From the NCBI RefSeq assembly GCF_902713615.1, contig NC_052154.1:81261072-81325071 (forward strand): 64,000 bases of DNA. Reading direction: 5' to 3'. Both the position numbers and the translations under genes were made by a program. The DNA comes from Scyliorhinus canicula. Taxonomy: Eukaryota. This document shows positions 17,771 through 42,311 of the stretch, in pieces. The notes beneath the pieces are model-generated. The model was not told the DNA's origin. It saw only the letters and a list, made by a program, of their open reading frames with translations, and did no database searches. How positions within the stretch are numbered: the first letter of the stretch is position 1; the number at the start of each line of letters is the position of its first letter.

Positions 17771-20377
17771 ATTCGTGATATTAAATTGTCCAAATGTTCA
17801 TTTGGGTAAGATTTTTAGGCATATATATCAAGAAAATGGAGTTAAGTCAGCCGCACTGACTGGAGGTCCAGTCTGCCAGAAGGTGATTGAATGACCCAGT
17901 ACCCTATAGAGTCGGAGTGGCTTACTACTGTTCCTGTGTTCGTATTTAATGCTGTACACTTCTGTCCGTTGATAAACTTGTTTGACTGCCAAACCATTTA
18001 ATGAAGACCCTAAGTCCATGATAATGGACAGGTGTTGATCTTGCCATGAATTCTGGTTTTGAACCAAAGTCCGAGAACGTGCAGGACAGTGAAGATAGCA
18101 ATTGTCCAATTTGAGAACTTCTGTCGTCAGCCAATCGGGTTTTCATGCACTCAAAACTAGTACTTGCAGACGGGCTTCCACCAAACGTTCCTGTAAATGC
18201 CTGATGTTCGATAATTATTAATCATGATTTTCATTTATATTCCTCAAACTTCCAATGGACGGTACAAGACAACAGAGAGCATTACAGTCCCTTGCATGGA
18301 CATGCCTCACATACGTAAATCAGGTCCATGTAAAAAGAAAATGCAGATATTCCGAGTCAACGGGAATAAAGGATAACATTATTTTGACGTTAATACTTTT
18401 CGTAAGTTAACTGTTTGTTATTGGAGCAGTGCTGAATAAATAGACGCATAATGAGAACGGTTAAGGATAGTGTTCGTAATAAATAGATTAAAAACTGCAA
18501 AAAAAAAAGGCCTTTGCTTGCAGCTAAGCTGCAAAAGTTGATCTACTAGGGGATACAGATTTCTATTAGTAAATGACAAAAAATGTGTAACAGATAGAAA
18601 TACCATCGTATTCAGGCAAGCCGAATTCAACAGACAAAATTGACCGGGGGGAGGGGCAGAAACATGTCAAATATAAATTCTAAATGAGATATACAGGTCC
18701 GTTACTCTTATCTGAATGGATGTAGTTATCGACACAACAATATATTCAAATTGCCAATATGACACTTTCATGACGAAACTAATATTCCAACCTTCTGTTC
18801 CCTCTTTGGAGAAAGCTCCTGGGCGGAAATCTGCACCATCTGTGAGCTCCAGAGGAGATGCTGAAATGTGTAATCAAATGTAATGCAGAATTCTACTCTG
18901 TGCGTTTCAAATCAAAGTTGGAGCATGGATTGACATTCCAGATATTCCGGCGTCACACGGTCTTCCGCGTCAGAATAAAATATGCTTGGCAATACATTAA
19001 ATATTTGAAAGTCGACTAATTTTCAAATAGGCGCATAAGATATTATACGATAATAATGGACGATGAGAATTACGGGGAAAACGCAAGAGGATTAAATGTT
19101 TCCGTACACACTGTGTTGCACTATGCAGAGATGAATTGTATTCGCGGCCATTGCTCTCACACCTAACCCGCTCCATGACCTCCTGTTTCAATTCAGAGCA
19201 GTGACCCCCTACCTCCCTATATGTTATCAACACTGTGTGGGGTCATCCTCCCTGTATATCGTTAGCAATATATCCGAATAAATTGCGATGCTCCGTTAAA
19301 GTATTTTTAAAATAAATACAAACACAAAGTAAAAGAAATAATAAAACGGGTCATTGTTCTACTGTAGGAGTATAACAGAACAGCTGCGGTATACAAAAGC
19401 CAATGTATTCCTTAAAATTAAAAATGACCATTAATTTTCCAGTCGAAATTCCTTGCAATAAACTGAGTGCCGTGAATAACCAGCCCTGCTTTCAATGAAA
19501 TCTCCCTTCTCTTCGCAACCAGCTCGAGGAGAATGGGATTTAGTTTGCTACTCCTCGCAGTTCCATCAGCGGATATCATCCAACTCCTCGAAAATTACTT
19601 CCTTCAGAAGAAGTTATATTCGGCTCCAAACAGTGAATCTGCTTCTCTCTCTGCAGATGCTGCCGGACCTGCTGTGTTTTTCCAGCACTTTCTGTTTTTA
19701 TTTCAGGATATCCGCGTTATTTTTCCCATTATTAAATATCTCTCGTTGCATGTCAGGTCTGCTGGACTAATAGCAGTAACAGTGAAACCGGTAGATACAG
19801 GACTAGAATGTCATCTCTGGCTCTGTGAAAATAAAATTAGCCTCAACAGCACTGAAATTAAAATTAGTGAGATGAGCAGCATTGTTAATCCTCATTGTCA
19901 TTACAGTGATTTCTCCTACCAGCCCGCTGGCTGGAGGCTGGGTGAGGTCTCGATTGCACTCGATTCTAAGTACTAAGGAATAAATATGTGCACACCTTAT
20001 TCTCCTGCATGAAGTAGAATGACTTAGATGGCGTGCTGGAAGACCACCTGAGACCCGAATTGTTAATTTCAGGATTTAATGAAAGATCAAATGTCTGGTG
20101 CTGACAATAAAAAACTATTGGAACCAATTGTGCCGGAAGCGGTTGAAAAACCATGGCTCTTCAAGTGACAGCGTTTGAGCAGCAGTTAGTACGTCAGTTC
20201 TACTTCCCGACACAAACACAAGTCTAAACTCACCCAATACGCTGTTTTAGTCATGTGACTTCTCATGTCCTGTTCACACGTTTCATAAACTTACCCAGGA
20301 AATCTATAATTTACCTAAACCGTTGTGAATATCGTTCTCATTTCCAGCAAGCAGCCAACTAATGTGATATTTGCAAT

Positions 20378-20432
20378 ATGTCGATGCAGATTACAGTTCA
20401 GTGCATGGCTCTTCTGGGCATTGTTTGGACAG
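20378..20432 (+). CDS. Exon 1 (signal peptide) of an NKp30/NCR3-like VJ-C1 IgSF receptor
   Basis: ATG at 20378 gives MSMQITVQCMALLGIVWT, followed by a phase-1 donor ACAG|GTATCT. It lies 201 bp upstream of a phase-1 V exon, the standard IgSF leader layout. Confidence 0.75.
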
Positions 20433-20633
20433 GTATCTTTAGCAACTAGATGCTGCAGGTTTCACAATAGCAGGTCCTAATTTAAAAGATTCTACATCCG
20501 TTACTCATTGTAAAATTAGATACTATACTTCAGTAAATCGGTAGCTGGTGTCTCTTAATGGTTTTTATAATTTACTTGTCTCAGTTAGTTTGCTTTATCT
20601 ATTGTATCGCCCTCTTTGTTAATTTTCTGATAG

Positions 20634-20939
20634 CCGCTGGAGTAACCTTTCGCGAAGTGGTTCAGTTGCCTAAATACTTGAAGGTGAACAGAGGTGAGAA
20701 TGCTTCCATGCACTGTGCATTTCCCCTAGATGAAGATCTGCCCGATGTTCGCTGGTGGAGACGCGAAAAGCCATCATTTCTCGAACCAGACAGCAGAAAG
20801 CGATTTGATGTGAACAAGGGAAGTGGTTCGTTGCAATTCTTGAATGTGACGTTTGCAGATTCCGGAGTTTATTATTGCAAAGTAAACTATCGGGAAAAAT
20901 CTAATGTAACTGGAACGGGCACCCAGCTCACTGTGTACG
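20634..20939 (+). CDS. Exon 2: V-set Ig domain with a germline-encoded J-like G strand
   Basis: Acceptor ttttctgatag|, donor TACG|GTAGGT, 306 nt, phase 1-1. Protein AGVTFREVVQLPKYLKVNRGENASMHCAFP...VRWWRRE...SLQFLNVTFADSGVYYCKVNYREKSNVTGTGTQLTVY has the B-strand Cys, C-strand Trp, DSGVYYC and GxGTxLxV. Confidence 0.95.
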
Positions 20940-21129
20940 GTAGGTGTTATTGGAAGCGGGAGGATTTCAGCTCTGTGCCATATATGTAATTTGTTCTTTT
21001 TAATGCTGGAGGAAAACCTGGTTGTAGCGAATTTATTTCACACAACACCGGATTGTCTGCCATTGACCTCGGTGCACAACAGGCATCTTAGTTTTGAAAT
21101 GAAGCAATGGAATCAGACCAAATAAAAAT

Positions 21130-21320
21130 AGAACGTTTTGGAAATACTGAGGGAGCCTCTGTGGAGAGAAACAAAATTAACCTTTCATGTCAATGATCAG
21201 AATCGATCTGAAACATTAACTCAGTTTCTCTGCACAGATGTTGCCTGACCTGCTGAATAGTCCCAGCATTTCCAGTTCGGATTTCACATTTGCAGCATCT
21301 GCAGTATTTTGCGTTTATGT
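21130..21320. repeat. Dispersed short repeat with an imperfect inverted structure (related pieces at about 19640-19705, 23625-23720, 52050-52170)
   Basis: Shared motifs gcagatgctg, gaaatctgaaat and gacctgctg.g...ccagcattt occur in both orientations. Family not determined. Confidence 0.6.
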
Positions 21321-22420
21321 TGTAATGGGATGAGATGGTCTGCTTCCTTCTCGCTAAAATACCTGTGCCACAATTCAACAATGGGAGCAACTGGAACACC
21401 TCCCAGGTCGTCATTTACAAAACATCAAAGATCATTTAATTCACCTCAACAAGGAAGGAAGATTCCGGGTGTGCTGGGTGATTCCTGCAGATAGAAATGG
21501 GAGGAGTAATGAACCCCCATTGTGGTGATTGCAGAGAGAAAGGAAATTCCCATTAAAGTAAGACAGGTCATTCGCGGTATTCGGTTTATTGCTTTTCACC
21601 GTTTCCAAATCGAGTTAGTTGATGTGAATCAGGAGGCGAATATCAATCGGGATTCCTGCTCCTTATCGCCGTCCATTTAAACTGAACAAGATGTCAACAA
21701 GAACAACGGCTAGCCTGTAACCAACTTCCAACCAAAGGTCAAAAGCCTTGGGTTCTTTTGCCAATCACCTTAAATCTGTATCTTCCGGTTACCGACACTC
21801 GTCACTGAGAAGAGTTTCTCCTTATTTACTTTATCAAAACTGTCCATAACTCTCAATGTCGCTGTCTAGCCTCATCTTAACCTTCTGGGCTCTCAGAGAA
21901 CAAACGTAACATCTCAAGTCTCCCACGGAACACAGGCCCCTTAACCCTGGTAAACTTATCACAAATCTTCGCCGAAGTCCCATTAAATGCCTTTTTTATA
22001 ACCTCGGATCAAACCTCCTGGCACAGCGACGAATATTCCACAACCCAGACAATGTTTCCGTCAATCCAATGCGCGAACTTGCCGATGTAACACTTTCTAT
22101 ACCGCAATGTCCGAAATTGAGATGGCTAAATCTTTGCTAGGTATGGGTATCAGGGAAATAGAATCGAGTTAAGGTAGAGCTCAGGTATAATCTAAATGAA
22201 TGGCAGAGCCGGCTAGAGGGACAGAATGGGCCCATGTTCCTATGTCGGCCGAGTTTATTTCTTAATTGTGTCCATTAAGAACGTGTTTGAAATTCAAGCT
22301 CTTTCCACAAAGGGAGCCTGCAACCCAGTCAGAGCGAAGATGTTGATCCTGCCCTCAATGCTGTATCCTATCCCTATCCTAGAGCTCGCAGGACGGTTAA
22401 GGTGTCCAATACCCATGTTT

Positions 22421-22736
22421 GAACATAGAGTGCAGAAGGAGGCCATTCGGCCCATCGAGTCTGCACCAACCCATTTAAGGCCTCACTTCCACCCTATCCC
22501 CATAACCCAATAACCCCTCCTAACCTTTATTTTTAGTCACTAAGGGCAATTTACCATGTCCAATCCACCTAACCTGCACGTCTTTAGACTGTGGGAGGAA
22601 ACCGGAGCACCCTGGGGAAACCCACACAGATAGGGGAGAACGTGCAGATTCCGCACAGTGACCCAGCGGGGAATCGAATCTGGGACCCTGGTGCTGTGAA
22701 GCCACACTGCTATCCACTTATGCTACCGTACTGCCC
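22421..22736 (-). mobile_element. tRNA-head SINE (CR1-type tail), in intron 2
   Basis: Reverse complement of the HE1-like consensus, ending ctgccc. Confidence 0.88.
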
Positions 22737-22819
22737 AACCTCTGGGGCACGCCAATCGGACCTTCCCTGATTAACTCACAACTGCTAAAGTGAAGGTTGG
22801 ATATCACCGAATATTTTGA

Positions 22820-23121
22820 TAATCATAATCTTCCTTAGTGTGTCAGAAGTAGGCTTACATTAACACTGCAATGATGTTACTGTAAAAATCCTCTACTCGC
22901 CACATTGCGGCGCCTGTTCGGGTACAGAGAGAGAACATTCAAAATGTCCAATTCACCTAATAAGCGTCCGTTTTTGAATAGTGGGAGCACCCGGAGGGAA
23001 CACACCCAGACACCGGGAGACCGTGCAGACTCCGCACAGAGACTAACCCAAACCGGGAATCGAACCCGGGTTCCAGGCATTGTGAAGCAACAGTGCTAAC
23101 CACTGTGCTACCGTGCCGCCC
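22820..23121 (-). mobile_element. tRNA-head SINE, second tail type, in intron 2
   Basis: gtaggcttacattaacactgcaatga...tgctaccgtgccgccc. Confidence 0.88.
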
Positions 23122-23993
23122 ATCCTCTGGCTCCATTTTTGTAATTCATGATTTTCATATACACTCCCCATTTTCGGAGGAAGGTTAGGACAGGTGACAG
23201 AGAGAACACTGGCTTATTTCTGCGGGGGGGGGGGGGGGGGGGGTTCAGTCGCATTTTGCATTATAACGAAAGATCCATGGGGAAAGAATGGAGGAATTCT
23301 GAGGTTTTCCCGGGAATAAAGACCAACATAAGTTTGACAGTTACCAATGTCTCTAATTTAATAATTTGCTTTTACTAGAGTAGGAAATGTAAAATTCTGA
23401 ATAAAATATATTAAACAGCTTAATTATAGTAAATAAAACAATGCAAACCTCAGAAGGGACTTCACTTCGATCTGAAAGGCGATTGTAGATGGAATGGACG
23501 GACAGTTAGAGCGGTTCTCGTCAGAAAATAGTCAAATTGGATTGCTCGAGGCAGAGTATTCTCCAGACAAAATGCGTTTAACAGACCGAATAAAATCACA
23601 GAAGGACAATCCCCTGAAATTAGCCACTCAAAACAAAACAAAATACTGCGGATTCTGGAAATCTGAAATGAAAACTCAGTCAGACCTGCCGAGTTAGTCC
23701 AGCATTTTCTGTTTTTATCCCTGGAATTGAACCCTGGGTTAGTATTTCCTATTCCGTTTGGGCAATCTGAATGGGTGTTGTGATCTATATAGCGATATTA
23801 TAATTAGAAAAGTAAAAGCTTTCCTGCCGTGCAACACATTTGCAGTGTTCTGACACACTAAGGAAGATTATGATTATTCACGGTAGGAAATAGGCCGGCA
23901 GCAGCAGCAACGGCGGGGTGGGGAGGGAGGGGGCTTGGTTCGGTGGGAGGGAGAACTGTGTGCATGGGTTTGTGGGAAATAGAATCGAGTTAA

Positions 23994-24069
23994 GGTAGAG
24001 ATCAGGTATAATCTAAATGAATGGCAGAGCCGGCTCTGCCATTCATTTAGATTATACCTGATCTCTACC
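23994..24069. repeat. Perfect 76-bp palindrome (38-bp arms, no spacer)
   Basis: ggtagagatcaggtataatctaaatgaatggcagagcc|ggctctgccattcatttagattatacctgatctctacc, checked base by base. Confidence 0.97.
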
Positions 24070-24333
24070 GGGTGTTATCTCTTTCCTTTTGTTGTTTGGG
24101 TGTTCTTTTGTTTTTTCTTTTGTTTCCAGTGCTTTTGAAGTGGGGGGGGGGGGGGGGGGTGCTGTTCTTGGGTGTTTAGCGCGGTTGTTTCGTTAATATT
24201 GTGGTGATATTTATATTTTGTAAAAATGTTAATAAAAATATTTTTTTATAAAAAACCACAAAGCACGGTAGAAGCCAGGGTCGATTCTCGCTTGGGTCAC
24301 TGTCTGTGCTGAGTCTGCACCTTCTCCCTGTGT

Positions 24334-24659
24334 CATAGAATCATAGAATTTACAGTGCAGAAGGAGGCCATTCGGCCCATCGAGTCTGCACCGGCTCCTG
24401 GAAAGAGCCCCCTGCCCAAGGTTAACACCTCCACCCTATCCCCATAACCCAGTAACCCCACCCAACACTAAGGGCAATTTTGGACACTAAGGGCACTTTA
24501 TCATGGCCAATCCACCTAACCTGTACATCTTTGGACTGTGGGAGGAAACCGGAGCACCTGGAGGAAACCCACGGGGAGGATGTGAAGACTCCGCACAGGT
24601 AGTGACCGAAGCTGGAGCTGTGAAGCGATTGTGCTACCCACAATGCTACCGTGCTGCCC
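24334..24659 (-). mobile_element. tRNA-head SINE (CR1-type tail), preceded by a + strand SINE head fragment at about 24258-24333
   Basis: catagaatcatagaatttacagtgcagaagg tail through gctaccgtgctgccc. Confidence 0.88.
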
Positions 24660-24982
24660 CTCCTCTCTTCCTGACATATCCAGACAGGAATATCACTCGA
24701 GGTCGCTGATGCCAAACATATTCCCGCGCAAGAATCTGGTATTTTAATTCTGAGCAGTGACACAGTCTTCCCTGGTTATTACCAATTGGCGAGATTGATC
24801 CTCTTGCTCACGAAACAGCTGGTAATTTTACCGAGCGCCCCATAACATTGTATACAATAAGTATAAACCCAAAGTTTAAATATAACGGGTAACTATTATC
24901 GCATTATGACTGTAAGAACAAGGTTACACAACTGAGAATATGCTCCTTTCAACTCAAAAATGTTTTTCACCTCTTATTAAAG

Positions 24983-25279
24983 TTCCTCCAACTCCCCTGA
25001 AAATGGTTCCGATTGAAGAGAATTCAGCGATTTCTCTGAAATTCGAGTGTCAAACGGCTGCCTTTTACCCGGAGGATTTCAGAATCTCCTGGCAAAGAGA
25101 TGGTGTGGAAATTCTGACCGGAATAGAAACTGTGAAAAGCGAGACAACGGAGGGTCTTTTTGAGGTTTCCAGCTCTTTGGCAGATGCAAGGCCTGTACTG
25201 AATGGAGTAGTTTATACCTGTCTGGTATCTCATATCTCCCTTAAGGGCCCCGCCAGTGTCAGCTACACCGTCATTCAAG
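24983..25279 (+). CDS. Exon 3: C1-set Ig domain
   Basis: Acceptor ctcttattaaag|, donor CAAG|GTAAGA, 297 nt, phase 1-1. Protein has C1 hallmarks: LKFECQTAAFYPEDFRISWQRDG, EGLFEVSSSL, VYTCLVSHISL. Confidence 0.95.
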
Positions 25280-26571
25280 GTAAGATTGGAAACATTTACA
25301 GAGGGGAGCGCGGGAAATGCTGCAAACTGTAGTTATTTATTAGACATGTATTAGAACAGCTGTTCAAACTCGGATATACAGGGAGAATGTAGATCGTATT
25401 TACTCACAACGTCAGGTCAATGGGAATCAATTAAACAATCAAGATGGTTTGTAGCTGGGGAAGCGAGACTTTCTCCCTGAATAGATCTGAAACCGGAGGT
25501 TGATGTGGGAATTGTTCAATACTGAAAGCTCATTCGTCCTCCAATTGTCAAATGAAATTAACTTATACATAAAATTGATCAGTTTTAGTCGTCACTTTTA
25601 TTTGGGACATATTATGTGTGGAACTTTAGGCAACATTTTCCAAGGGCGTTACTTCCATCATCCAGATTCCTTTTAGCATTAATAATCTGGTTTTTTTTAA
25701 TCCATCAATTAAACTTTGAAAACATTTGACCTGGGTTTACTTCATTCACTGAATTCCTTCTCTCTTCAAGTTTTTGCTCATTGCTGATTTATGAAGAGTT
25801 GTTTCCAAATGAACAAGGGTGGTAACTGCAGCTATGGACCCTTTGCTCCAATAAACAATTGTATTTTACAGTTATTTGCACTGTGAGTGTACATTAACGA
25901 ATTGCCCCGGAAGTAGCGAGAATTTGACATTTGGTCCCTGTGTCAGGGAGAGCCTGTCTGCCATGATGGGAGCCGACCCGAGCTCCCAGAGTGAAAATCA
26001 AGAACCTTAAAGCATATGTGTCGTCCTTATGTACTTCTCAGTGCGGGGAGTCAGCTAAATCGAGTGTGATTTGATCGCTGAGGGCGGTGTTGGGTGTCCG
26101 ACTTGTAGTGTCCCATGTTATTGTTATAAAATCCACTTCTGCTTTCTTCTACCCAGCCAAAAATATTTGAAAGATATTTGTTCAGGATTTAATTATCACT
26201 ATTGCTAATAAAACTACCGGAGAGAACAGAGTATATCAATTCTATCCTAAAATGGACATCGTTATCCTATATTCATTATGGAACCAAACTTCGGAATAGA
26301 AAATAAGCCAATGGCCGACAAGTTGGCGCTGTCACCAAACAACAGGCTGCCTCGGAAATGGAACACACCATGGTACAACTCACATGGTGCTCATTTTGCC
26401 GAGTATAGTTTGAGGTTATTATCATGAGTTAATCCAACGTTGGAAATTTAATATTGGTCCCGAAGTTTAGATTAACAATATTGTGGATCCATTTCAGTGT
26501 ACCAAAGGCAATGGTATTTGCTTCCGTCCGATAATACCTATTGATGCGTATCTTTTAATCCGGTATTGTAG

Positions 26572-26678
26572 ATCACAGTTTCCGCAACATTGTGATTCCA
26601 CGGCTTGTTCTGGGTTTTCTGATCATTCTTGGATTGCTGGGCATAATTGTGGACCATGTAAGATATGTTCAACTGAAG
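26572..26678 (+). CDS. Exon 4: transmembrane exon with an intramembrane Arg
   Basis: Phase-1 acceptor gtattgtag| gives DHSFRNIVIPRLVLGFLIILGLLGIIVDHVRYVQLK. Phase-0 donors occur after 26657 (CAT|GTAAGA) and after 26678 (AAG|GTGAGA). The four exons sum to 765 nt, or 255 codons, with no stop. Confidence 0.85.
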
Positions 26679-27336
26679 GTGAGAGGACGTCATTTTAATT
26701 CAATAAACCACATACAAAGTCTATACACAGATAGCATTGGTGGGCTGGTCATGGAAAATGTGCTTTTGTCCATCGAGCTCACCTAATTTAAGATGAACGA
26801 TGAATGATACTAAATTCTGCTGTCAAATAACTGACAACGTAGAAGATGGACACTTTTAACACAATTTTCATGTTTTGTGTTAAGGAAAAGTCACAGACAT
26901 GAAACGTTAGCATTTCCTTTTCCCCGCGTGTAGCCTGATATGCCGAGTATCTGCCGCATTTTCAGTTTTAATTTTTCATGATATATGTTTCCTCCCCGTG
27001 CCTGCGTAGGTCTCACTCCAACAACCCTAAATATGTGCAGGGTAGGTGGAATGGCCATGATAAATTGCCCCTCTTTTGGAAAAATGTGGGCACTTTAAAT
27101 GTAAAAAAAATTAAAAATAACATAAGTTTCGATATTTAGTTCAGTTTCGTGCAGAATAAGCCAAGTAATAAACACCGTTTAGTTTTTAAAAAATATTTTA
27201 TTCAAGGTATTTTCATAAAAATAAACAAAAGCAGAAGAACAACCATACAGCATTATAAACAACCAACACCCACTCCACTCCATTCCCCCACGATCGCCCC
27301 CTTCTGCCATCCTACCTTCCCCATTTTAATCCCGTT

Positions 27337-27367
<31 letters not shown>

Positions 27368-27681
27368 ACCTCCATCAGGCCCCTTTGCTGATTCCTCAAA
27401 GCTCCTTAAATAAATCAATAAATCACGTCTGCGTGAACCCATCGACCGACCCCCTCAAGGTGAACGTGACCCTCTCCATCCTCAGCAATTCAGCCAGGTC
27501 ACTCACTCACATCCCCGCTTTCGGCAGCTCTGAGTGGCGCCACCCGAGCAAGGTCCATCTCCAGGCTACCAGGGAGGCAAAGGCCAAAACATCGGCCTCT
27601 CTCACCCCCTGGAGTCCTGGGTCTTCTGACACCCAAGAATATCACCACATCTGGACTTGTGGCCACCTTCACCCCAGTATC

Positions 27682-28023
27682 GGTAGCATGGTGGTTAGCA
27701 TAAATGCTTCACAGCTCCAGGGTCCCAGGTTCGGTTCCCGGCTGGGTCACTGTCTGTGCGGAGTCTGCACGTCCTCCCCGTGTGTGCGTGGGTTTCCTCC
27801 GGGTGCTCCGGTTTCCTCCCACAGTCCAAAGATGTGCGGGTTAGGTGGATTGGCCATGCTAAATTGCCCGTAGTGTCCTAAAAAAAAGTAAGATTAAGGG
27901 GGGGTTGTTGGGTTACGGGTATAGGGTGGATACGTGGGTTTGAGTAGGGTGATCATTGCTCGGCACAACATCGAGGGCCGAAGGGCCTGTTCTGTGCTGT
28001 AATGTTCTATGTTCTATGTTCTA
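27682..28023 (+). mobile_element. Young SINE subfamily copy
   Basis: Near-identical to the copies at 34338, 41489 and 56791, with a (tgttcta)n tail. Confidence 0.92.
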
Positions 28024-28794
28024 TTACATCCGTAAATCCCTGCAAGGACTCCTTCAGCTTTGGACATGCCCAAAACAAATGGACATGATTTGCAGGACTC
28101 TCCACGCCCCTGCCCACACCTAACCTCTACCCCCTCAAAAAACCTACTCATCCTTGCTACTGTCCTATGTGCCCTATGGACTACTTTAAACTGAATGAGG
28201 CTTAGCTTCACACACGACGAGGACTCATTCAACCTCCATAGGCCACAGCCCACGTCCCAGCCTCCACCTGCCCTCCCAGCTGCTCCTCTCACTTGCAATT
28301 TCTATCCCTCATCAGGGCCCCCTCCCAGTCCATCAACTCCTTGTAGACCTCAGATACCTTCCCCTCCCCTATCTCATCCCTCGACAGTACCTTATCCTGC
28401 AACGCCTGGGGTGGCAGCCCAGGAAAAGAGGCCACCTTTCTCTTTACAAGGTTCTGAAACATGAACCTTTGTAACACCATAATTTCATCTGTCTGCACCC
28501 GTCCCACCAGCGACAATTGCAGCACATCCCACCTGTTAAAGTCTCCCTTCATCTGCTTTACCAACCAAGTCAGGTTCAACTTGTGCAGCTGCGTCCAACC
28601 CTGCGTTACCTGGATGCTCAAGTACATAAAACCCACCCCACCACCTTGAACAGTAGCTCCCCTAACCTCCTCTCATGACCGCTTGTCTCAATCCAGAACA
28701 GTCACTCTTTGCAATATTCAACTTTTATCCGGAGAACCGGCCAAATTCCTCCAAAATCCCCATGATCTCCCCGATATTGCCCAGTGGGTCTGAG

Positions 28795-29272
28795 TGTCGT
28801 GGAAATAAGATAGTCAGATGCTTTGAGCTTCATTTCAGGTCATTTATTTGGACACGAATCATGGAGGGGTCATAGTTGTCAGAAGGCCACTCCAAATACC
28901 CTAACTTACAATATTAAGAGCATATATTTATACCAGGAAATAAACAACCTCAAGGACAAAAAACAGGCTTCAACAGCCATGTTTACACAACACAAGCCTT
29001 GGGAATGTTCAGGACAAGTTATCTTAGTATGTTTTCTGTCTGTGGCTAAAACAATTTCAAAGCAGATTGTCAGCAGAAAAATAGCGCAGCTGTCGTATTT
29101 GTTTACACTATTCGACCTTCCAAGAGTTTGTACAGAAGAAGATAAAAATATAGTCAAGTATCCCATCATGCTTTTAGCAAGTGCCTTTTCTTATAAAATA
29201 TAGTCAAGCAACTAGATATTAATGAATGCCCTGAAGCGGGCAACTATTGCGCACACTAAATTCCCTTCTACA
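28795..29272 (-). mobile_element. Solo LTR (478 bp) inserted in the L1-c RT region
   Basis: TGTCGTGGAA...TTCTACA termini and a perfect 5-bp TSD CTGAG (28790-28794, 29273-29277). Removing it restores the host L1 sequence (rc ...tatatatctcagacccactgg...). The minus strand has TATAAA at about 28930 and AATAAA at 28843-28848. Confidence 0.85.
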
Positions 29273-29628
29273 CTGAGATATATAACAGCAGGTCGTCCGC
29301 ATACAGCGAGACCCTGTGCTTGATATCTCCCCACACAATCCCTCCCATGTCCCTTGATGTCCTAAGCATCATTGCCAGTGGCTCTATCACAAAAGCAAAG
29401 AACAATGGGAAGAGCAGACACCCCTGCCTCATCCCCCGTTGCAGTCCAAAGTATCCCAAAGCCACGAGGTTCATCAGCTCATTTGTGACCAGTGCCTGTA
29501 TAGCAACCGGACCAAGTCACAAACCCCTGCCAAACCCAAACCACCTCAACACCTCAACTCAATCAAATGCCTTCTTCACATCCATCACCATCACTACCTC
29601 CACCTCCTGCCTCTCTGATAACAATCAT

Positions 29629-32600
29629 TTTTAAAAAGATAATATTTATTGAAAAACTTTGTATTTATACAGCAACATCGAATAAAATACCAACAATAAC
29701 AATAATGATAGCAATCATAAACACTCGCCCCTCCTCAATGAACACAACATATTAACAACTTAAATTAACACAATGTTAGGTTACATAACCATAGAAAAAA
29801 AATAGAAACTACAATAAGGAACACCCCCCCCCCCCCCCCCCCACCCCCCTGGGGTTGCTGCTGCTATTGACCAAGATACCTATCTTTGAACCAGGAAGTC
29901 CAGAAAAGGCTGCCACCGTTCATAGAACCTTTGTATTGATCCTCTCAGGGCAAATTTGACCCTCTCCAATTTTAGAAATCCCGCCATGTCACTGATCCAG
30001 GTCTCCACACTTGGGTGCCTCGCATCTTTCCACTGCATCAAGATCCTCCGCTAGGCTACTAGGGACGCAAAGGCCAGGACACCGGCCTCTTTCGCCTCCT
30101 GCACTCCCGGCTCCACCGCAACTCCAAAAATCGCGAGTCCCCACCCTGGTTTGACCCTGGACCCAACCACCCACGACACCGTCCCCGCCACCCCCTTCCA
30201 GAATTCTTCCAGTGCTGGGCATGCCCAGAACATATGGGAATGATTCGCTGGACTCCCCGAACACCTGGTGCACCTGTCCTCACCCCCAAAGAACCTACTC
30301 ATCCTAGTCCCGGACATGTGGGCCCGGTGCAGCACCTTGAATTGGATGAGACTAAGCCTCGCACATAAAGAGGAGGAGTTGACTCTCTCCAAGGCATCCG
30401 CCCAAGTCCCGTCCTCTATCTGCTCCCCAAGTTCCCCCTCCCATTTAGCCTTCAGCTCCTCCACTGACGACTCCTCCACCTCCTCCATCACCTTATAAAT
30501 GTCAGACACCTTCCCCTCTCCGACCCACACCCCCAAAAGCACTCTGTCCATCGCCCCCCGTGAGGGCAGCAAAGGGAACTCCTCTACCTGTCGCCTAGCA
30601 AACGCCTTTACCTGCAAGTATCTGAACATGTTCCCTTGGGGGAGCCCAAATTTATCTTCCAGTTCCCCCAGGCCCGCAAACCCCCCGCCAATAAACAGGT
30701 CCCTCAATTCACTGATGCCCACCCTTTGCCACCCCCTAAATCCCCCATCAGTGTTCCCCGGGATGAACCGATGAATTCCACCTAATGGAGCCACCATCGA
30801 GCCCCCTGTTTCCCCCCTATGCCATCTCCACTGTCCCCAGATTCTTAGGGTCTCCGCCACCACCGGGCTCGTGGTATACCTCTTAGGAGAGAGCGGCAAC
30901 GGCGCCGTTGCCAAGGTACCCAGGCTCGCACCTCTACATGACGCCATCTCCACTCTTTTGCACGCCGCCCCCCCCCCCCCCATCACCCATTTACACACCA
31001 TTGACACATTGGCCGCCCAATAGTACCCCAAAAGGTTGGGCAGCGCCAGCCCGCCTCTATCCCTCCCTCGCTCCAGGAAAACCCTCTTCACTCTCGGAGT
31101 CCCATGTGCCCACACAAAGCTCAAAATACTGCTAGTCACCCTCCTAAAGAAGGCCCTGGGGATGAAGATGGGCAGGTACTGAAAGAGGAACAAGAACCTC
31201 AGAAGCACCGTCATTTTGACGGACTGCACCCTCCCCGCCAACGACAACGGCAGCATGTCCCACCTCTTGAACTCCTCCTCCACCTGATCCACAAGCCTGG
31301 TGAAATCATGCTTGTGAAGAGTTCCCCAGTCCCTGGCCACCTGCACCCCCAGGTACCTAAAACTCTCCCATGCCCTCCTAAGCGGGAGCCTACCAATTCC
31401 TTACCCCTGGTCTCCAGGGTGCACCACAAATACCTCACTCTTGCCTAGATTTAGTTTATAGCCTGAAAAGGTCCCAAACTCAGCTAGCAGCTCCATCACC
31501 CCCGGCATTCCTCCCACCGGGTCCGCCACATACAGTAACAGGTCATCGGCATACAATGACACCCTATGTTCCTCCCCACCTTGCACCAAACCTCTCCACC
31601 TCCTTGAATCCCTCAACGCCATCGCCAATGGCTCGATTGCCAATGCAAACAACAAGAGGGACAGGGGGCAACCCTGCCTGGTAAAGCCGGAGGTACTCCG
31701 ACCTCCTCCCATTCGTGGCCACACACGCCATCGGGGCCTCATATAGCAGCCTCACCCATCTAATAAACCCTTCACTAAATCCAAACCTCCCATAAGCACC
31801 CCCACTCCACTCTATCGAAGGCCTTCTCCGCATCCAGCGCCACCACTATCTCAGCCTCCCCCTCAATCGCCGGCATCATAATGACATTCAACAATCTCCG
31901 CACATTCGTGTTCAGCTGCCTTCCCTTTACAAAACCTGTCTGATCCTCGTGTACAACCCCTGGCACACAGTCCTCTATCCTGGTGGCCAGGATTTTTGCC
32001 AGCACCTTGGCATCTACATTAAGGAGAGATATGGGCCTGTATGAACCACACCGCTGGGGGTCCTTGTCCCTCTTTAAAATTAACGAAATCAGCGCCCGCG
32101 ATATCGTCCCCCCTTCCCATGCTTCATTAAGTGTCCGCACCAGCAAGGGGCCCATTAGGTCCACACACTTTTTATAAAATTCCACCGGGAACCCATTCGG
32201 CCCCAGTGCCTTCCCTGACTGCATCTGCCCGATCCCCTTAACTAGCTCCTCCAGCTCAATCGGCGCCCCCAACCCCTCCACCTGCTCCTCCTGCACCGTC
32301 GGGAAAGATAGCCCGTCGAGAAACATCTCCATTCCCCTCCTCTCCACCGTTGGCTCCGACCGGTACAGTTCCCCGTAAAAGTCCTTGAAGACCTCATTCA
32401 CCTCTACCCCGTTCCGCACCACATTCCCACTCTTGTCTCTCACTCCAGCAATTTCCTTAGCCGCATCCCGCTTGCAGAGCTGATGAGCCAGCATCCTGCT
32501 CGCCTTTTCACCATGTTCATACACTGCCCCTTGTGCCTTCCTCCACTGTGCCTCCGCCTTCATAGTGGTCAGCAAATCAAATTTAGCCTGTAGGCTGCGC

Positions 32601-35600
32601 CTCTCCCCCAACAGTCCCTCCTATGGTGCCTCCGCGTACCTCCTATCTACCTCCAGCATCTTCCCCACCAGCCTATCCCTCTCACTCCTCTCGCTCCTCT
32701 CCCTGTGTGCCCGGATGGATATCAGCTCCCCACGAATCACTGCCTTCAGGGCTTCCCAGACCATCCCCACCTGGACCTCCCCCATATCATTCACCTTGAG
32801 GTACCCCTCAATACTTGCCCGGACCCTCCTACACACCTCCTCCTCCGCCAACAACCCCACATCCAACCGCCACAATGGGCGCTGGTCCCGCACCTCCCCC
32901 ATCTCCAACTCCATCCAATGCGGAGCGTGGTCGGAGATTGCAATGGCCGAATATTCAGCCTTCTCCACTCTCGGAATTAGTCCCCTACTCACCACGAAGA
33001 AGTCTATCCGAGAATAAACCCTATGTACGTGGGAGAAGAAAGAGTACTCCCGTGCCCTCGGCCTCACAAACCTCCATGGATCCACCCCTCCCATCTGGTC
33101 CATAAACCCTCTTAGTACCATGGCCGCCGCCGGCCTCCTACCTGTCCTTGAACTGGACCGATCCAGTGAAGGATACAACACCGTATTGAAGTCCCCCCCA
33201 TAATCAGACCTCCCACCTCTAGACCCGTCCCAGCATACGCCTCATAAAGCCCACATCGTCCCAATTTGGGGCATACACACTAGCAAGTACCACCTTCTCT
33301 CCCTGTAGCCTGCCCCTAACCATAACATACCTACCCCCCTTATCCGCCACCACCTCAGATGCCTCAAACAACACATTTTTCCCCACCAGAATCGCCACTC
33401 CCCGGTTCTTCACATCCAACCCAGAGTGGAAAACCTGCCCCACCCAACCCTTCCTCAGACGGACTTGGTCCACCACCTTCAGGTGGGTCTCCTGAAGCAT
33501 TGCCACATCTGCCTTTAGCCCACTCAGATGAGCAAGTACCCTCGACCGCTTCACCGGCCCATTCAATCTTCTCGCATTCCAGGTGACCAACCGGATCAGA
33601 GGGCGTCCCGCACCCCTCCCCCGTCGACTAGCCATAGCCCGTCGACTGCCTGCCCCACGCCAGCACACCCCGCCCGACCCAGTCCCCAAAGCGACAACAC
33701 CTCACCTCTGTCCCCCCCCCCCCCGGCCCACACCAGTTCCTTCCTGACCCTGCCAGCAGCAACCCGGTATTCCCCTTCCCCCCAGGCTAGGAGCCCTCCT
33801 AGCCGCGAACCGTCCTCCATTGTACTTCCATGGGTCAGCTAGCTTCTGCTGACCGCGGAAACTCCCGCCAAAAACCCGACCCCTCCCAAAGTGGGATCAT
33901 CCCCCATCCTGTCCATCCTCCAGGCCCCGCCCCCCCGTCATCATCTCCACCCCCCAGCCCCGCAACACGGGAATCCAGAGGAAAGCCCGCGCTTTCGCAC
34001 TGCCCCACCACACCCTTCTGACGCAGCTCCCAAATACCAGCCCCACTCCATACCCCCAACCCGATATAGAATACAACAAACCCCCCCAACCCTCCCCGCA
34101 AGATACAAAACTCAAACAATGCCCCACAACAAAAAAAACACAACAACACCCCAATAAATAACCATATCAAAAGTACAAAAATACAGAAAAAGAGAACACA
34201 GCAACAGCAGAAACCAACAATAAAGCATTACAACCGACCCCGCAACTCCCAACCCCTAGTTCGAGTCCAGTTTCTCCGTCCACACGAAGGCCCACGCCTC
34301 CTCCGGGGAATCAAAATAATAATAATCAAATAATAAAGGGGCAGCAGGGTAGCATGGTGGTTAGCATAAATGCTTCACAGCTCCAGGGTCCCAGGTTCGA
34401 TTCCCGGCTGGGTCACTGTCTGTGTGGAGTCTGCACGTCCTCCCCCTGTGTGCGTGGGTTTCCTCCGGGTGCTCCGGTTTCCTCCCACAGTCCAAAGATG
34501 TGCGGGTTAGGTGGATTGGCCATGCTAAATTGCCCGTAGTGTCCTAATAAATGTAAGGTTAAGGGGGAGGAGGAGGGAGGGGTTGTTGGGTTACGGGTAT
34601 AGGGTGGATATGTGGGTTTGAGTAGGGTGATCATGGCTCGGCACAACATTGAGGGCCGAAGGGCCTGTTCTGTGCTGTACTGTTCTATGTTCTAATGTCG
34701 GTCCAAATAAATTACCCACAGGCGCGCAGGCTGCAGCATTCCAAACTTTATCTTCTTCTTGTAGAGCACCTCTTTCGTCCGATTAAACCTGGACCGCCGC
34801 TTAGCCACCTCCGCACTCCAATCCTGGTAGATCCGTACTACCCCATTCTCCCAGTTGCTGCTCTTCACCTTCTTGGCCCAGCGCAGCACACACTCCCGAT
34901 CACTGAACCGGTGGAACCTCACCAGCACCGCACGCAGGGGTTCATTCTCCTTAGGCCTCCTGGCCAGTACCCTGTGGGCTCCCTCCAGCTCCAGGGGCAG
35001 ATGGAAAGATCCTGCCCCCACTAGCGAGTTCAGCATCGTGGCCACGTAGGTTGTCAGATCCGACCCCTCCAGCCCCTCCGCAAGGCCCTAGACCCTCAGA
35101 TTTTTCCACCTCATGTGGTGATCAAGCTCCTCAAAGCGGTCTTGCCACTTCTTGTGGAGTGCCTCGTGCCCCTCCACCTTACGCATGAGGACCATGGCCT
35201 CCTCCTCTCATTCAGTGGCCTGCGCCTGCAGCGCCTGGATGGCAGCACCCTGGGTCATCTGAATCTCCAAGAGCTTTTTATTCATTTCCTGCAGAGAGCT
35301 CAGCACCTCAGCCTTGAAATCTGCAAAACAGCGCAGGAGAGCAGCTTGCTGATCTAGGGCCCACTGCTTCCACTCCTCTGGTGCTCCGCCGGCCACCATC
35401 TTGGAATCCTTCCCCCGTTTTTTCTGGGGAGCTGCTGCTGTTTTTTCCCCCTTTCCACTCCCAGTTCAAGTCATGAAATGCGGAGAAAGTCAATCAGCAC
35501 ACCTGCTCCCACCGGGAGACATCGAAAAAAATTCCGTTTTGGGCTCTAAAAAGAGCCGAAAAGTCCGTTTGAATCGGGAGCTCCCAAATGTGCGGCTTCC

Positions 35601-35626
35601 TACGTCATCGCCGCCACCGGAAGTCC
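29629..35626 (-). mobile_element. Full-length, relatively young L1-clade LINE (L1-d)
   Basis: Perfect 16-bp TSD ctctgataacaatcat (29613-29628, 35627-35642) and a 5' end rc gacttccggtggcggcg. ORF1 remnants at about 34270-35400. ORF2 survives in long pieces at 33689-30051 (RLVTWNARRLNGP, YADDLLL, CTRCSGSPANHSHMFWACP). Confidence 0.95.
34338..34694 (+). mobile_element. Young SINE subfamily copy interrupting L1-d ORF1
   Basis: Full head, body and tail. The L1 ORF1 reading (DRHYYFDSP) is split by it. Confidence 0.93.
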
Positions 35627-36170
35627 CTCTGATAACAATCATAATTACATTGAAAAGCCTCCTCACATTTGCCGCCAACTGCTTCCCTTTCACCCTTTGT
35701 TCCTCTCCCATCATGTTGGGATGCAATCCTCGATTCACGAGGCCAGCACCTGTACTAACAGCTTGGTGTCCATGTTCAGTAACAAAAGTGGGTGGTACGA
35801 CCCACACTGCTCTGGATCCTTGTCATTTTCCAATGTCATGGAGATGGAAGCCTGTGACAATATAGGGGGAGTTCCCCCCTCTCCTTTGGCTCATTATATG
35901 CCCTCACCAGCAAAGACCCCAGTTCTCCCCGAAGCTTTCTATAAAACCCCACTGCAGATCACTGCCTGCATTGCCCCTGTACTGTCCATCACCTCCCTCA
36001 ACCCAACTGGGGCTCCCAATCCCTGAACCAACCTCTCCTGTACCTTGGGAAATTCCAGCCCATCCAAAAACCGCTGCATGCCCCCCCCCCCCCCCCCCAC
36101 AAAACCCGGCCAGTGCTGACTCGTAAAATGTCTCAAAGATGCCATTAACCCCCTCCGTGTCCAACACTAC

Positions 36171-37967
36171 AAACAAAGAACAAAGAAAAATACAGCAAAG
36201 GAACTGGCCCTACAACCCTCCAAGCGTGTGCCGACCATGCTGTCCATCTCAACTAAAATCTTCTACACTTCCGGGATCCGTATTTATGTATTTGTCAAAA
36301 TGTTCCTTAAATATCACTATTGCCCCTGCTTCCACCACCTCCTCTGACAGCGAGTTCCAGGCACCCACTATCCTCTGTGTAAAAAACTTGCCTCGTACAT
36401 CTCCTCCAAACCTTGCCCCTCGCATCTTCAACTTATGCCCCCTAGTAATTAACCCCTCTACCCGGGGAAAAGACCTCTGACTATCCACTCTGTCTATGCC
36501 ACTCATAATTTTGTAGACCTCCATCAGGTCGCCCCTCAACCTCTGATGTTCCAGTGAGAACAAACCAAATTTATTCAACCTCTCCTCATAGCTAATGCCC
36601 TTCATACCAGGCACAACATCCTGGTAAATCTCTTCTGCATCCTCTCTAAAGCCTCCACATCATTCTGGTAGTGTGATGAGCAGAATTGAACACGATACTC
36701 CAAGCGTGGCCTAACTAAGGTTCTATACAGCAGCAACATGACTTGCCAATTTTTATACTCAATGCCCCGGCCAATGAACGCAAGCATGCTGTATGCCTTC
36801 TTGACTACCTTCTCCATCTGTGTTGCCCCTTTCAGTGACCTGTGGACCTGTATACCTAGATCTCTCTGACTGTCAATACTCTTGAGGGTTCTACCATTCA
36901 CTGCATATTCCCTACCTGCATTAGACCTTCCAAAATGCATTACCTCACATTTGTCCGGATTAAACTCCATCTGCCATCTCTCCGCCCAAGTCTCCAAACG
37001 ATCTAAATCCTGCTGTATCCTCTGACAGTCCTCATCGCTATCCACAATTCCACCAACCTTTGTGTCGTCTGCAAACTTACTAATGAGACCAGTTACATTT
37101 TCCTCCAAATCATTTATATATACGACGAACAGCAAAGGTTCCAGCAGTGATCCCTGCGGAACACTGCTAGTCACAGCCCTCCAATCAGAAAAGCACCCTT
37201 CCATTGCGACTCTCTACCTTCTATGACCTAGCCAGTTCTGTATCCACCTTGCCAGCTCACCCCTGATCCCGTGTGACTTCACCTTTTGTACCAATCTGCC
37301 ATGAGTGACCTTGTCAAAGGCTTTACTGAAGTCCATATAGACAACGTCCACTGCCCTATCTGCACCAATCATCTTTGTGACCTGCTCGAAAAACGCTGTC
37401 AAGTTAGTGAGACACAACCTCCCCTTCACAAAACCGTGCTGCCTCTTGCTAATATGTCCATTTGCTTCCAAATGGGAGTAAATCCTGTCTCGAAGATTCT
37501 CTCCAATAATTTCCCTACCACTGACGTAAGGCTCACCTGCCTGTAGTTCCCTGGATTATCCTTGCTACCCTTCTTAAACAAAGGAACAACATTGGCTATT
37601 GTCCAGTCCTCTGGGACATCACCTGAAGACAGTGAGGATCCAAAGATTTCTGTCAAGGCCTCAGCAATTTCCTCTCTAGCCTCCTTCAGTATTCTGGGAT
37701 AGATCCCATCAGGCCCTGGGGACTTATCTACCTTAATATTTTACAAGACGCCCAACACCTCGTCTTTTTGGATCTCAATGTGACCCAGGCTATCTACACA
37801 CTCTTCTCCAGACTCAGCATCCACCAATTCCTTCTCTTTGGTGAATACTGATGCAAAGTATTCATCTAGTACCCCACCCATTTACTCTGGCTCCACACAT
37901 AGATTCCCTCGCTTGTCCTTCAGTGGGCTCACCCTTTCCCAGGCTACCCACTTGCTTTTTATGTACC
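36171..37967 (-). mobile_element. 5'-truncated CR1-clade LINE inside L1-c
   Basis: RT ORFs at 36602-37204 (ISKFADDTK) and 37214-37471 (VYMDFSKAFDKV), C-terminal FFTQRIVGAWNSL, and an (aacaaag)n tail. Confidence 0.93.
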
Positions 37968-40900: not shown

Positions 40901-41488
40901 GAAATGTGTTATATAAATATTAATCCTTCATTCGATTTTACAAGATTTTTATGCATGGTTGAATAATTCGTTACACGGCAGCCAATTTCCTCGAGTACTC
41001 TTTCCATTATTGCGTTAATCTGTGCGAAAACTGGGAGATTAATAATCTGGCAAAGGTATTTAATTTCGCATGTATTCTTCTGAAGGTGAACTATTTCTGT
41101 GTGGTTACTTGTATCAAGTTATCCTCTTTGCTTCCCTTCTCGAGGCACGGTGTCGAGCTGGGACGCTCACCATCTTCTCCCTCTGCCTAAACTTGCTTCC
41201 AAATTACCTGGAAAGACGTGAGCATCAGGTGACTGAGCTCGGATTAGTCCTGGCTAAATTAGGAATTGCAGTCGGGGCCTCGGAATAAGGATCTGGAGCA
41301 GAATGTAACGTTAATTTCCCCCTAGATCTCCCCGAAAAGGCTTAGATCTTCAACTGCTGCAGAACTCGGAGCATATGATGGGCCGCCACGATGGGCCGAA
41401 TGGCCTCCTTCTGCACTGTAAATTCTATGAAAATTCTATGAAATATAATACCGCACATAGAGGACATCTAACCAGACATTGTTAGACC

Positions 41489-41834
41489 GGGCAGCAGGGT
41501 AGCATGGTGGTTAGCATAAATGCTTCACATCTCCAGGGTCCCAGGTTCGATTCCCGGCTGGGTCACTGTCTGTGTGGAGTCTGCACGTCCTCCCCCTGTG
41601 TGCGTGGGTTTCCTCCGGGTGCTCCGGTTTCCTCCCACAGTCCAAAGATGTGCGGGTTAGGTGGATTGGCCATGGTAAATTGCCTGTAGTGTCCTAATAA
41701 AAGTAAGGTTAAGAGGGGGGGTTGTTGGGTTACGGGTATAGGGTGGATACATGGGTTTGAGTAGGGTGATCATGGCTCGGCACAACATTGAGGGCCGAAG
41801 GGCCTGTTCTGTGCTGTACTGTTCTATGTTCTAT
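41489..41834 (+). mobile_element. Young SINE subfamily copy
   Basis: Near-identical to the copy at 34338-34694. Confidence 0.93.
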
Positions 41835-42007
41835 TGTCTGATGCATGTGGCTTTGTGCGACACCCACGGGTTTCATCCGTCTTTATTTAGAATTAGAATA
41901 TGATTAATTTACATGTGCACAAGTATTGGATACCAAGTGACTGGGGCTATTTTGAAAATTTCTAATCAGATGCATAACCATGGCTATATTTTATTTAAAT
42001 GTCTTTC

Positions 42008-42311
42008 GGCCAACATGGTAGCACAGTGGTTAGCACCGTTGCTTCACAGCACCAGGGTCCCAGGTTTGATTCCTGGTTTGGGTGGCTGTCTGGGCCGAGT
42101 CTGCACGTTCTCCCCGTGTCGGTGTGGGTTTCCTCCCACAATCCAAAGATGTGCAGGTTAGGTGGATTGGCCACGCTAAATTGCCCTTAATTAAGGTGGG
42201 ATTACTGGTTTACGGGATAGGGAGGTGTCGTCTTAGGTGGGATACTCTTTCCAAGAGCCCGTGCACACTCACTGGGCTGAATGACCTCCTTCTGCACTGT
42301 AAATTCTATGA
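42008..42311 (+). mobile_element. tRNA-head SINE (older, CR1-type tail)
   Basis: Head catggtagcacagtgg, tail ttctgcactgtaaattctatga. Confidence 0.85.

Follow-up and report, generated by a model that had tools for sequence, protein, structure and literature searches.

The 64,000-nucleotide stretch of the catshark Scyliorhinus canicula analyzed here (NC_052154.1, positions 81,261,072 to 81,325,071 of the forward strand; hereafter the window) contains a gene in which a V domain and its own J-like strand are encoded by a single exon, followed by one C1-set domain and a transmembrane (TM) helix bearing an arginine. We call it the VJ-C1 gene. On balance, it is probably an activating-type member of a paired receptor family, i.e., a type I membrane glycoprotein combining a non-rearranging VJ domain, a C1 domain and an Arg-bearing TM helix. 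Its relatives, which have been given only inconsistent automatic names, occur in two classes with opposite TM and tail types on matching ectodomains, and the VJ-C1 gene belongs to the class with the Arg.

A first-pass annotation, made from the sequence letters, had proposed four exons splicing in phase into a frame of 255 codons. These exons (20378-20432, 20634-20939, 24983-25279 and 26572-26678) proved exact in position, borders and phase, as each has AG/GT borders and together they form 255 stop-free codons. The frame does not end there, however. Since exon 4 ends at a GT donor and a terminal exon was found at 42786-42800, 16.1 kb past exon 4, the coding sequence comprises 259 codons. This fifth exon, which encodes SVKD followed by TGA, was located by tblastn and a regular-expression search, and a good polypyrimidine tract and an AG precede position 42786. 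The 259-residue product is 100% identical to RefSeq protein XP_038662025.1 of S. canicula, automatically named “SIRP-alpha-like”. The RefSeq gene spans 22,423 bp, exactly 20378-42800, and the RefSeq model is thus restricted to coding sequence, without untranslated regions (UTRs). The features of the gene are as follows.

20378 to 20432, plus strand: exon 1, start codon (ATG at 20378) and first part of the leader, 55 nt or 18 codons plus 1 nt, with the GT donor at 20433.
20433 to 20633, plus strand: leader intron, 201 nt, with GT and AG borders.
20634 to 20939, plus strand: exon 2, end of the leader and complete V domain with J-like strand (Pfam V-set, AlphaFold2, RNA contig).
20712, 20719, 20732, 20772 and 20848: differences of a V-exon haplotype found in runs of two studies.
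20940 to 24982, plus strand: intron 2, 4,043 nt, with SINE-like (short interspersed nuclear element-like) repeats at about 22400-24800 (word depth, joints within repeats).
24983 to 25279, plus strand: exon 3, C1-set domain (Pfam C1-set, AlphaFold2, RNA contigs).
26572 to 26678, plus strand: exon 4, short stalk, TM helix and membrane-adjacent VRYVQL (AG acceptor, GT donor, AlphaFold2 helix).
26679 to 42785, plus strand: intron 4, 16.1 kb, swollen by decayed minus-strand remnants of long interspersed nuclear elements (LINEs; matches of open reading frames).
42786 to 42800, plus strand: exon 5, SVKD then TGA (tblastn, regular expression, gene span).
43198 to 43203, plus strand: candidate AATAAA polyadenylation signal, about 400 nt past the stop (read from the sequence).

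Two observations on alternative forms belong here. RefSeq isoform X1 (P0029) uses an ATG at 20558 within the leader intron (open reading frame 20558-20989) and reads through into the V exon, which swaps the signal peptide for a different hydrophobic N-terminus; this may be either a real alternative start or a retained-intron artefact. Further, Heterodontus and Heptranchias share the terminal exon (exon 5), and some of their models splice it straight to C1, giving TM-less forms.

The domain architecture proposed in the first-pass annotation, with a split leader, a single-exon VJ with J-like strand, one C1-set domain and an Arg in the TM helix, was borne out by sequence and Pfam. The product matches V-set (2.5e-14) and, above the cut-off, C1-set (3.7e-08, versus 4e-04 for C2-set_2). 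The 201-nt intron interrupts its leader, an arrangement shared with antigen-receptor V genes. Within the V domain are C46, W59 and C100, together with three N-glycosylation sites (N41, N89 and N109); the J-like strand of this domain occupies residues 110-120 (G112-x-G114-T-x-L117-x-V119), after which the V exon proceeds directly to its GT donor. The absence of a recombination signal sequence (RSS) beside the V exon, likewise noted at first pass, stood: a scan of 20300-21300 on both strands returned one weak intronic match (6/7 heptamer, 6/9 nonamer), which equals the background rate of the window (0.19 per kb). The C1 domain contains C143, W157 (in FRISWQRDG) and C200 (in YTCLVSH). A stalk of seven residues, without Cys, leads to the TM helix I226-V246, in which R230 (codon 26601-26603) stands at the fifth position from the outer face. 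The helix is followed by D247-H248, and the cytoplasmic tail has 13 residues. All 12 family-invariant residues are kept, among them the two disulfide pairs and the two core Trp. An AlphaFold2 model computed from a 25-sequence family alignment (mean pLDDT 84.8) consists of two beta-sandwich domains and one long helix, with V strands at 28-121 (pLDDT mostly >90), C1 strands at 127-216 and the helix at 222-258.

This layout could also be taken for one chain of a dimeric receptor similar to the T cell receptor (TCR), with V-V and C1-C1 pairing either with itself or with another family member. The VJ plus C1 arrangement and the split leader match antigen-receptor chains, and the best sequence match in the PDB, UrIg2 (3.3e-18), is a homodimer (PMC12227049). 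Nevertheless, we give this reading little credence. The stalk offers no Cys for an interchain bond, the second framework region reads WWRREK instead of a WYQQ-type interface, and Val stands at the Phe/Trp position of the J motif. In addition, the modelled V and C1 domains are extended as in B7 and SIRP proteins (root-mean-square deviation, rmsd, 2.4-3.8), not elbowed as in light chains (rmsd at least 8). A homodimer prediction for the ectodomain scored 0.00, which is evidence neither way.

Transcription of the gene was assessed in public RNA runs. Run X1, which is available as assembled contigs, contains 10% of the words of the locus, a share in line with the exon fraction. A 414-nt contig of this run (depth 36) covers 20649-20938 and resumes at 24982-25105, thereby showing the predicted splice from V to C1. 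Other contigs tile the C1 exon at a depth of 49-113 and cover 24982-25277 without differences. One further contig spans 25217-25277 and then continues elsewhere, while the bin 26425-26624 has a depth of 13.5; we infer that this depth fits a continuation across 25279/26572 into exon 4. Thus, of the junctions put forward for confirmation by RNA sequencing, 20939/24983 was seen in a contig, 25279/26572 rests on depth, and the reads left 20432/20634 uncovered, as well as 26678/42786.

Words of the V exon, which has diverged so far that it has no 31-mers in common with paralogs, occur in seven runs from four studies. Their absence from many other S. canicula runs suggests restricted expression. Two raw-read RNA runs, X4 and X5, have reads on the intronic repeats and none on the exons, and are uninformative for the VJ-C1 gene. 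The same V-exon allele was found in two independent studies. It differs by three replacements (H45L, E52K, P65Q) and two silent changes and contains no stops, and no difference appears in the 124 nt of C1 carried by the same contig. This shared haplotype may represent polymorphism of the V domain.

Relatives of the product were collected to place it in a family. Word-indexed searches returned 28 of them, or 31 when a profile was used. Of the best 150 matches of an exhaustive profile search, about 100 are single-stretch representatives of clusters formed at 50% identity. All of these carry both GxG[ST]xLxV and YxCxVxH and are at least 29% identical to XP_038662025.1. Wherever a source organism was looked up (20 of 20 representatives), and for every family match that names its source, it was a shark, ray or chimaera. 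The genera include Scyliorhinus, Chiloscyllium, Hemiscyllium, Heterodontus, Heptranchias, Mustelus, Carcharodon, Cetorhinus, Mobula, Hypanus, Hemitrygon and Narcine as well as the chimaera Callorhinchus. A single C1 motif is present in 35 of the 38 proteins of the first family set in which a C1 motif was found. The first match outside the chondrichthyans is a bovine SIRP-beta1-like protein (P0041), aligned over the V domain only and with 88 bits, compared with at least 224 bits within the family. Word-indexed protein searches beyond the family yielded only this bovine protein and a weak frog Ig-like match (32 bits), the latter gained with a looser threshold.

Per species, a single record of chromosome size holds nearly all listed members, suggesting one locus; one member, from Mobula birostris, lies instead on an unplaced contig of 33.7 kb. 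The VJ-C1 gene itself is on the catshark chromosome of 198.79 Mb and is the sole family member in the window, the remainder of which consists of repeats. No further family exons were detected in the window, where extra matches concern only transposon-derived parts of two gene models. The catshark major histocompatibility complex (MHC) is on chr13. No MHC gene was found within the window, and the XP numbers of the VJ-C1 gene and its paralogs are absent from the MHC and paralogon tables of PMC10751288. From the sequences searched, we take the VJ-C1 family to be large, unnamed and so far confined to cartilaginous fishes. Its automatic names range from SIRP-alpha-like, SIRP-beta-1-like and B7H6-like to Ig lambda-like, TAPBPR-like, TCR-beta-like and MHC class II beta-like, and, as long as no curation takes place, such inconsistency will lead comparative work astray. 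The gene itself is already a RefSeq prediction. The suggestion of a possibly uncharacterised family member holds, given a family that is listed under these names only. Some members may have been described earlier, for example as shark B7H6. Papers of 2023 and 2025 on non-rearranging receptors of sharks, PMC12227049 among them, discuss only UrIg, UrIg2, NCR3 and PRARP.

Two classes were defined from the family alignment and from tabulated features of the TM segment and tail. In class 1, an Arg lies within the hydrophobic stretch, four to six residues in, the inner end is marked by Asp/Glu-His, and the tail measures 9-30 residues; members come from six genera (Scyliorhinus, Heptranchias, Mustelus, Carcharodon, Cetorhinus and Heterodontus). 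In class 2, the TM segment is uncharged and contains a GCAGG-like motif, and the tail, 60-140 residues long, carries conserved AxYAxLN, LTYAAL and TxYA[DEG]V; these fit the consensus of immunoreceptor tyrosine-based inhibitory and switch motifs (ITIM/ITSM). With its Arg and short tail, the VJ-C1 gene belongs to class 1. The two classes cut across ectodomain similarity. One catshark pair consists of P0002, with an Arg in the TM, and P0033, with an ITIM tail; identity between them is 97% for V and 92% for C1. P0047 and P0102 are a similar pair. Near-identical ectodomains on opposite TM and tail types are the signature of a paired receptor family. On a tree of 68 ectodomain sequences, the class labels, which are heuristic calls, need 9 changes, and shuffled labels need 9.4 on average; members of both classes are thus intermixed over the whole family.

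The first-pass annotation had spoken of an activating, innate-type receptor. This view has gained strength from same-chromosome paralogs with uncharged TM segments and ITIM/ITSM tails, most of all from the inhibitory-type P0033, whose V domain is 97% identical to that of the Arg-bearing P0002; activation as such would follow by analogy. Two observations on the TM segments may be added. In P0004 (XP_038661931.1, same chromosome but outside the window), Arg replaces the Cys of GCAGG (giving GRVGG) and the tail ends before the ITIM motifs, which suggests an apparently independent second route to the activating type. Moreover, the Asp/Glu-His at the cytoplasmic end of the Arg-type helix (IIVDHV, 26652-26669, in the VJ-C1 gene) is conserved across the six class 1 genera. 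We know of no counterpart of it in mammalian activating receptors.

How such a receptor would work can be proposed by analogy. The V domain would bind a ligand, and the buried R230 would recruit a dimer of an adaptor bearing immunoreceptor tyrosine-based activation motifs (ITAM) via an Asp in the adaptor's TM segment. Sibling genes with matching ectodomains, uncharged TM segments and ITIM/ITSM tails would give the opposing signal through SHP-type phosphatases. An ITAM adaptor dimer is predicted from an Arg near the outer third of the TM segment combined with a short tail poor in motifs, as in NKp30, NKp46, FcalphaRI and SIRP-beta. NKp30 and NKp46 signal through CD3zeta/FcRgamma, and SIRP-beta signals through DAP12. 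That the two TM and tail types are mutually exclusive, and that the Arg is kept over six genera, argues for a functional Arg. Adaptor coupling, activating output and ligand binding of the VJ-C1 protein itself would thus be expected.

Several points weigh against this interpretation. The Arg is near the outer interface and could snorkel to lipid head groups, and the VRYVQL of the tail fits the ITIM consensus, although it lies only three residues past the helix and other genera do not conserve it. The adaptor partner is a proposal drawn by analogy, and a survey of 2014 found no FcRgamma chain in shark data (PMC4016189). Expression in immune cells is presumed, as the runs that contain the gene give their tissues in coded form, the junctions 25279/26572 and 26678/42786 were not directly seen in reads, and the RefSeq model has no UTRs, its gene span being the coding span. 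Finally, the TGA of exon 5 stands at the position of an Arg in paralog P0002, whose tail extends 17 residues further. The 16 codons past the TGA (within 42798-42850) are still 65% like the P0002 tail, and the stop appears consistent with a CGA-to-TGA change of an Arg codon. Since the tail is cut where P0002 has Arg, some decay is possible.

The history of the gene bears on this last point. Compared with catshark paralogs, the VJ-C1 gene is 87-92% identical in C1 and 86% in the TM segment, but only 49-50% in V, and its V domain is nearer to V domains of Heterodontus (61-62%) than to those of the catshark paralogs. In a C1 tree it lies within the catshark clade (support 98) on an end branch of 0.077, whereas in a V tree it falls outside this clade on an end branch of 0.53. 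The gene is thus a mosaic of a diverged V and homogenised C1 and TM parts. Either its V domain evolved fast or an old V lineage was joined to locally homogenised C1 and TM exons.

Taken at its worst, the same evidence would describe a decaying, non-signalling copy, i.e., an orphan gene of activating type which lost its ligand, whose V domain is drifting and whose tail was shortened by a nonsense change. The long V branch relative to C1, the TGA in place of the P0002 Arg codon with recognisable tail sequence beyond it, the model without UTRs and the two raw-read RNA runs with zero reads on exons would all agree with that. We consider it rather improbable, because the frame is intact over 259 codons with canonical sites at all splices, 12 of 12 family-invariant residues are kept and the V domain is modelled by AlphaFold2 as a high-confidence fold. 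The gene is also represented by spliced contigs at depths of 36-113 in run X1 and by its V exon in runs of four studies, and the transcribed allele has three replacement and two silent changes and zero stops. For an activating-type member of a paired family, a diverging V combined with uniform C1 and TM parts is the pattern expected of pathogen-driven activating receptors.

Both long introns contain repeats. Intron 2 holds two blocks of SINE-like repeats, on which the word depth of runs reaches 3x10^5 with many repeat-to-repeat joints; loose ends in these repeats read GGGAATCGAACCTGGGACC (tRNA-like). Decayed LINE remnants on the minus strand, at 30051-33689 and 36602-37228, make up much of the 16.1-kb intron 4. 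Open reading frames at 31775-32611 and 36602-37204 match RVT_1, and one at 33219-33689 matches the endonuclease/exonuclease/phosphatase family. The segment 36755-37228 also gives a tblastn match to the transposable-element-derived N-terminal extension of the Heterodontus model P0035. As this extension matches the reverse transcriptase of intron 4, P0035 is probably a transposon fragment fused to a receptor.

Innate control of self and non-self depends centrally on paired receptors (SIRP, KIR, Ly49 and PILR, for instance), which have been described mainly in bony vertebrates. In the survey of 2014, no FcR-, KIR- or LILR-type receptors were found in sharks (PMC4016189). The VJ-C1 family would show cartilaginous fishes running the logic of paired receptors on a VJ plus C1 chain, which has the shape of half an antigen receptor. 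It bears on the form and signalling of the pre-RAG receptor and on the origin of V-C1 proteins of the SIRP, B7H6 and tapasin type. A more far-reaching reading is that the family is a surviving lineage of an ancestral single-chain VJ-C1-TM receptor from which SIRP, B7H6/tapasin-type proteins and possibly the rearranging receptors arose. This we regard as speculative and unlikely. If true, adaptor-coupled activation and ITIM pairing on a chain shaped like an antigen receptor would have existed already at the base of the jawed vertebrates, and the family would be a third non-rearranging antigen-receptor-like lineage of sharks beside UrIg/UrIg2 and NCR3. Such a third lineage is not discussed in the papers of 2023-2025 on receptor origins that we consulted.

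Known receptor families were compared with the VJ-C1 protein by sequence and by structure. The best sequence matches in the PDB are UrIg2 (9dmx, 3.3e-18), where the match is distributed among several C domains, and SIRP-alpha (4.3e-16). SIRP-alpha aligns with V and C1 in one stretch (residues 26-210, 40.6 bits), whereas the best single stretch of UrIg2 reaches 26.7 bits. The best structural match of the whole model is human B7-H6 (4zso_E; Z 17.5, rmsd 3.8 over 188 residues, 23% identity), and Rst/Neph1, butyrophilins and PD-L2 come within one Z unit of it. Foldseek against the PDB and AFDB Swiss-Prot places light chains, TCR-beta, TAPBPR, B7H6, SIRPs, CD276 and PD-L1 all between 1e-13 and 1e-16 and so does not discriminate between the candidate families. 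Neither do domain profiles run against the PDB, as multi-domain titin, contactins and heavy chains come out on top by summed domain scores. The Protein Atlas gave generic V-set, C1-set and butyrophilin-type clusters only. Among look-alike clusters from a protein language model, the commonest family set (28 of 100 matches) has a best cluster with the name SIRBL.

The B7H6 match raises the question of whether the gene encodes a shark B7H6-type molecule, i.e., a cell-surface ligand of the shark NCR3 (NKp30) family instead of a receptor. Several family members are named “NCR3 ligand 1-like” by NCBI, 4zso_E (Z 17.5) is the top structural match of the whole model, AFDB lists B7H6 at 2.7e-13, and both proteins have an ectodomain of V plus a C1-like domain in an extended arrangement. 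Flajnik et al. (2012; Immunogenetics 64:571) are said to have stated in their abstract that gene numbers of B7H6 and NKp30 correlate “from sharks to mammals”, with shark B7H6-like genes counted. However, the structural match does not stand apart from Rst/Neph1, butyrophilins and PD-L2, all within one Z unit. In sequence, B7H6 scores no better than SIRP; it is not among the 60 best PDB matches, which do include SIRP-alpha and SIRP-gamma. B7H6 is a ligand with an uncharged TM segment and a long tail, unlike the VJ-C1 protein with its Arg and 13-residue tail. Matched ectodomains on Arg-TM and ITIM classes are a signalling logic of receptors and not known for B7 ligands, and we know of no paired Arg-TM and ITIM forms of B7H6. 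A ligand of this type is an unlikely explanation.

In several respects the family resembles the SIRPs. Both have an N-terminal germline V domain with a J-like GxGTxLxV strand in one exon, directly followed by a C1-set domain, and both form pairs with near-identical ectodomains, one with an ITIM tail (LTYAAL-type) and the other with a basic TM residue and a short tail. However, SIRPs have two C1 domains (V-C1-C1), whereas the VJ-C1 gene has a single C1 exon between V and TM. The basic residue of SIRP is a Lys in mid-membrane, in contrast to the Arg near the outer face and the Asp/Glu-His at the inner end in the VJ-C1 class. Identity is only 20-25%, with 88 bits against at least 224 within the family. 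A survey of 2026 places the SIRP family at Tetrapoda (PMC13262535).

NKp30/NCR3 shares with the VJ-C1 protein a non-rearranging VJ-type V domain in one exon, a TM Arg, a short tail and the nature of an innate, germline-encoded receptor, with the reservation that the VJ-C1 tail, although similarly short, contains the membrane-adjacent VRYVQL. The main difference is that NKp30 has no C domain, while the VJ-C1 gene has a C1-set exon (24983-25279) that is spliced to V in RNA. A shark NCR3 family has reportedly been described by Kinlein et al. in 2021. No member of the VJ-C1 family is named NCR3-like, whereas NCR3-like genes, so named by NCBI, appear in the MHC gene list of sawfish (PMC10751288, supplement).

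UrIg and UrIg2 are similar in that VJ occupies one exon, the leader is split in the canonical way and the C domains are of C1 type, and they are known only from cartilaginous fishes, as is the VJ-C1 family so far. UrIg carries three C1 domains and is a secreted protein; UrIg2 forms a disulfide-linked homodimer and has nine or more C domains (PMC12227049). The VJ-C1 gene differs from both by its one C1 domain, a stalk without Cys, the Arg-bearing TM segment and its membership of a paired multigene family. Chicken PRARP, reportedly described by Fu et al. in 2019 (cited in PMC10751288), is a germline VJ-C1, non-rearranging membrane protein which has been discussed as a relic of the pre-RAG receptor. 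Immunoglobulin light chains (IgL) and TCR chains, germline-joined or rearranging, were rejected as identities of the gene: identity to light chains is 18-23% (16-23% when TCR-beta is included), there is no RSS and no membrane-proximal Cys, and a TM exon is present.

In summary, each of SIRP, NKp30, B7H6, UrIg/UrIg2 and IgL/TCR has a defining feature that the VJ-C1 gene lacks. By analogy, its product would work most like an activating receptor of the SIRP-beta or NKp30 type.

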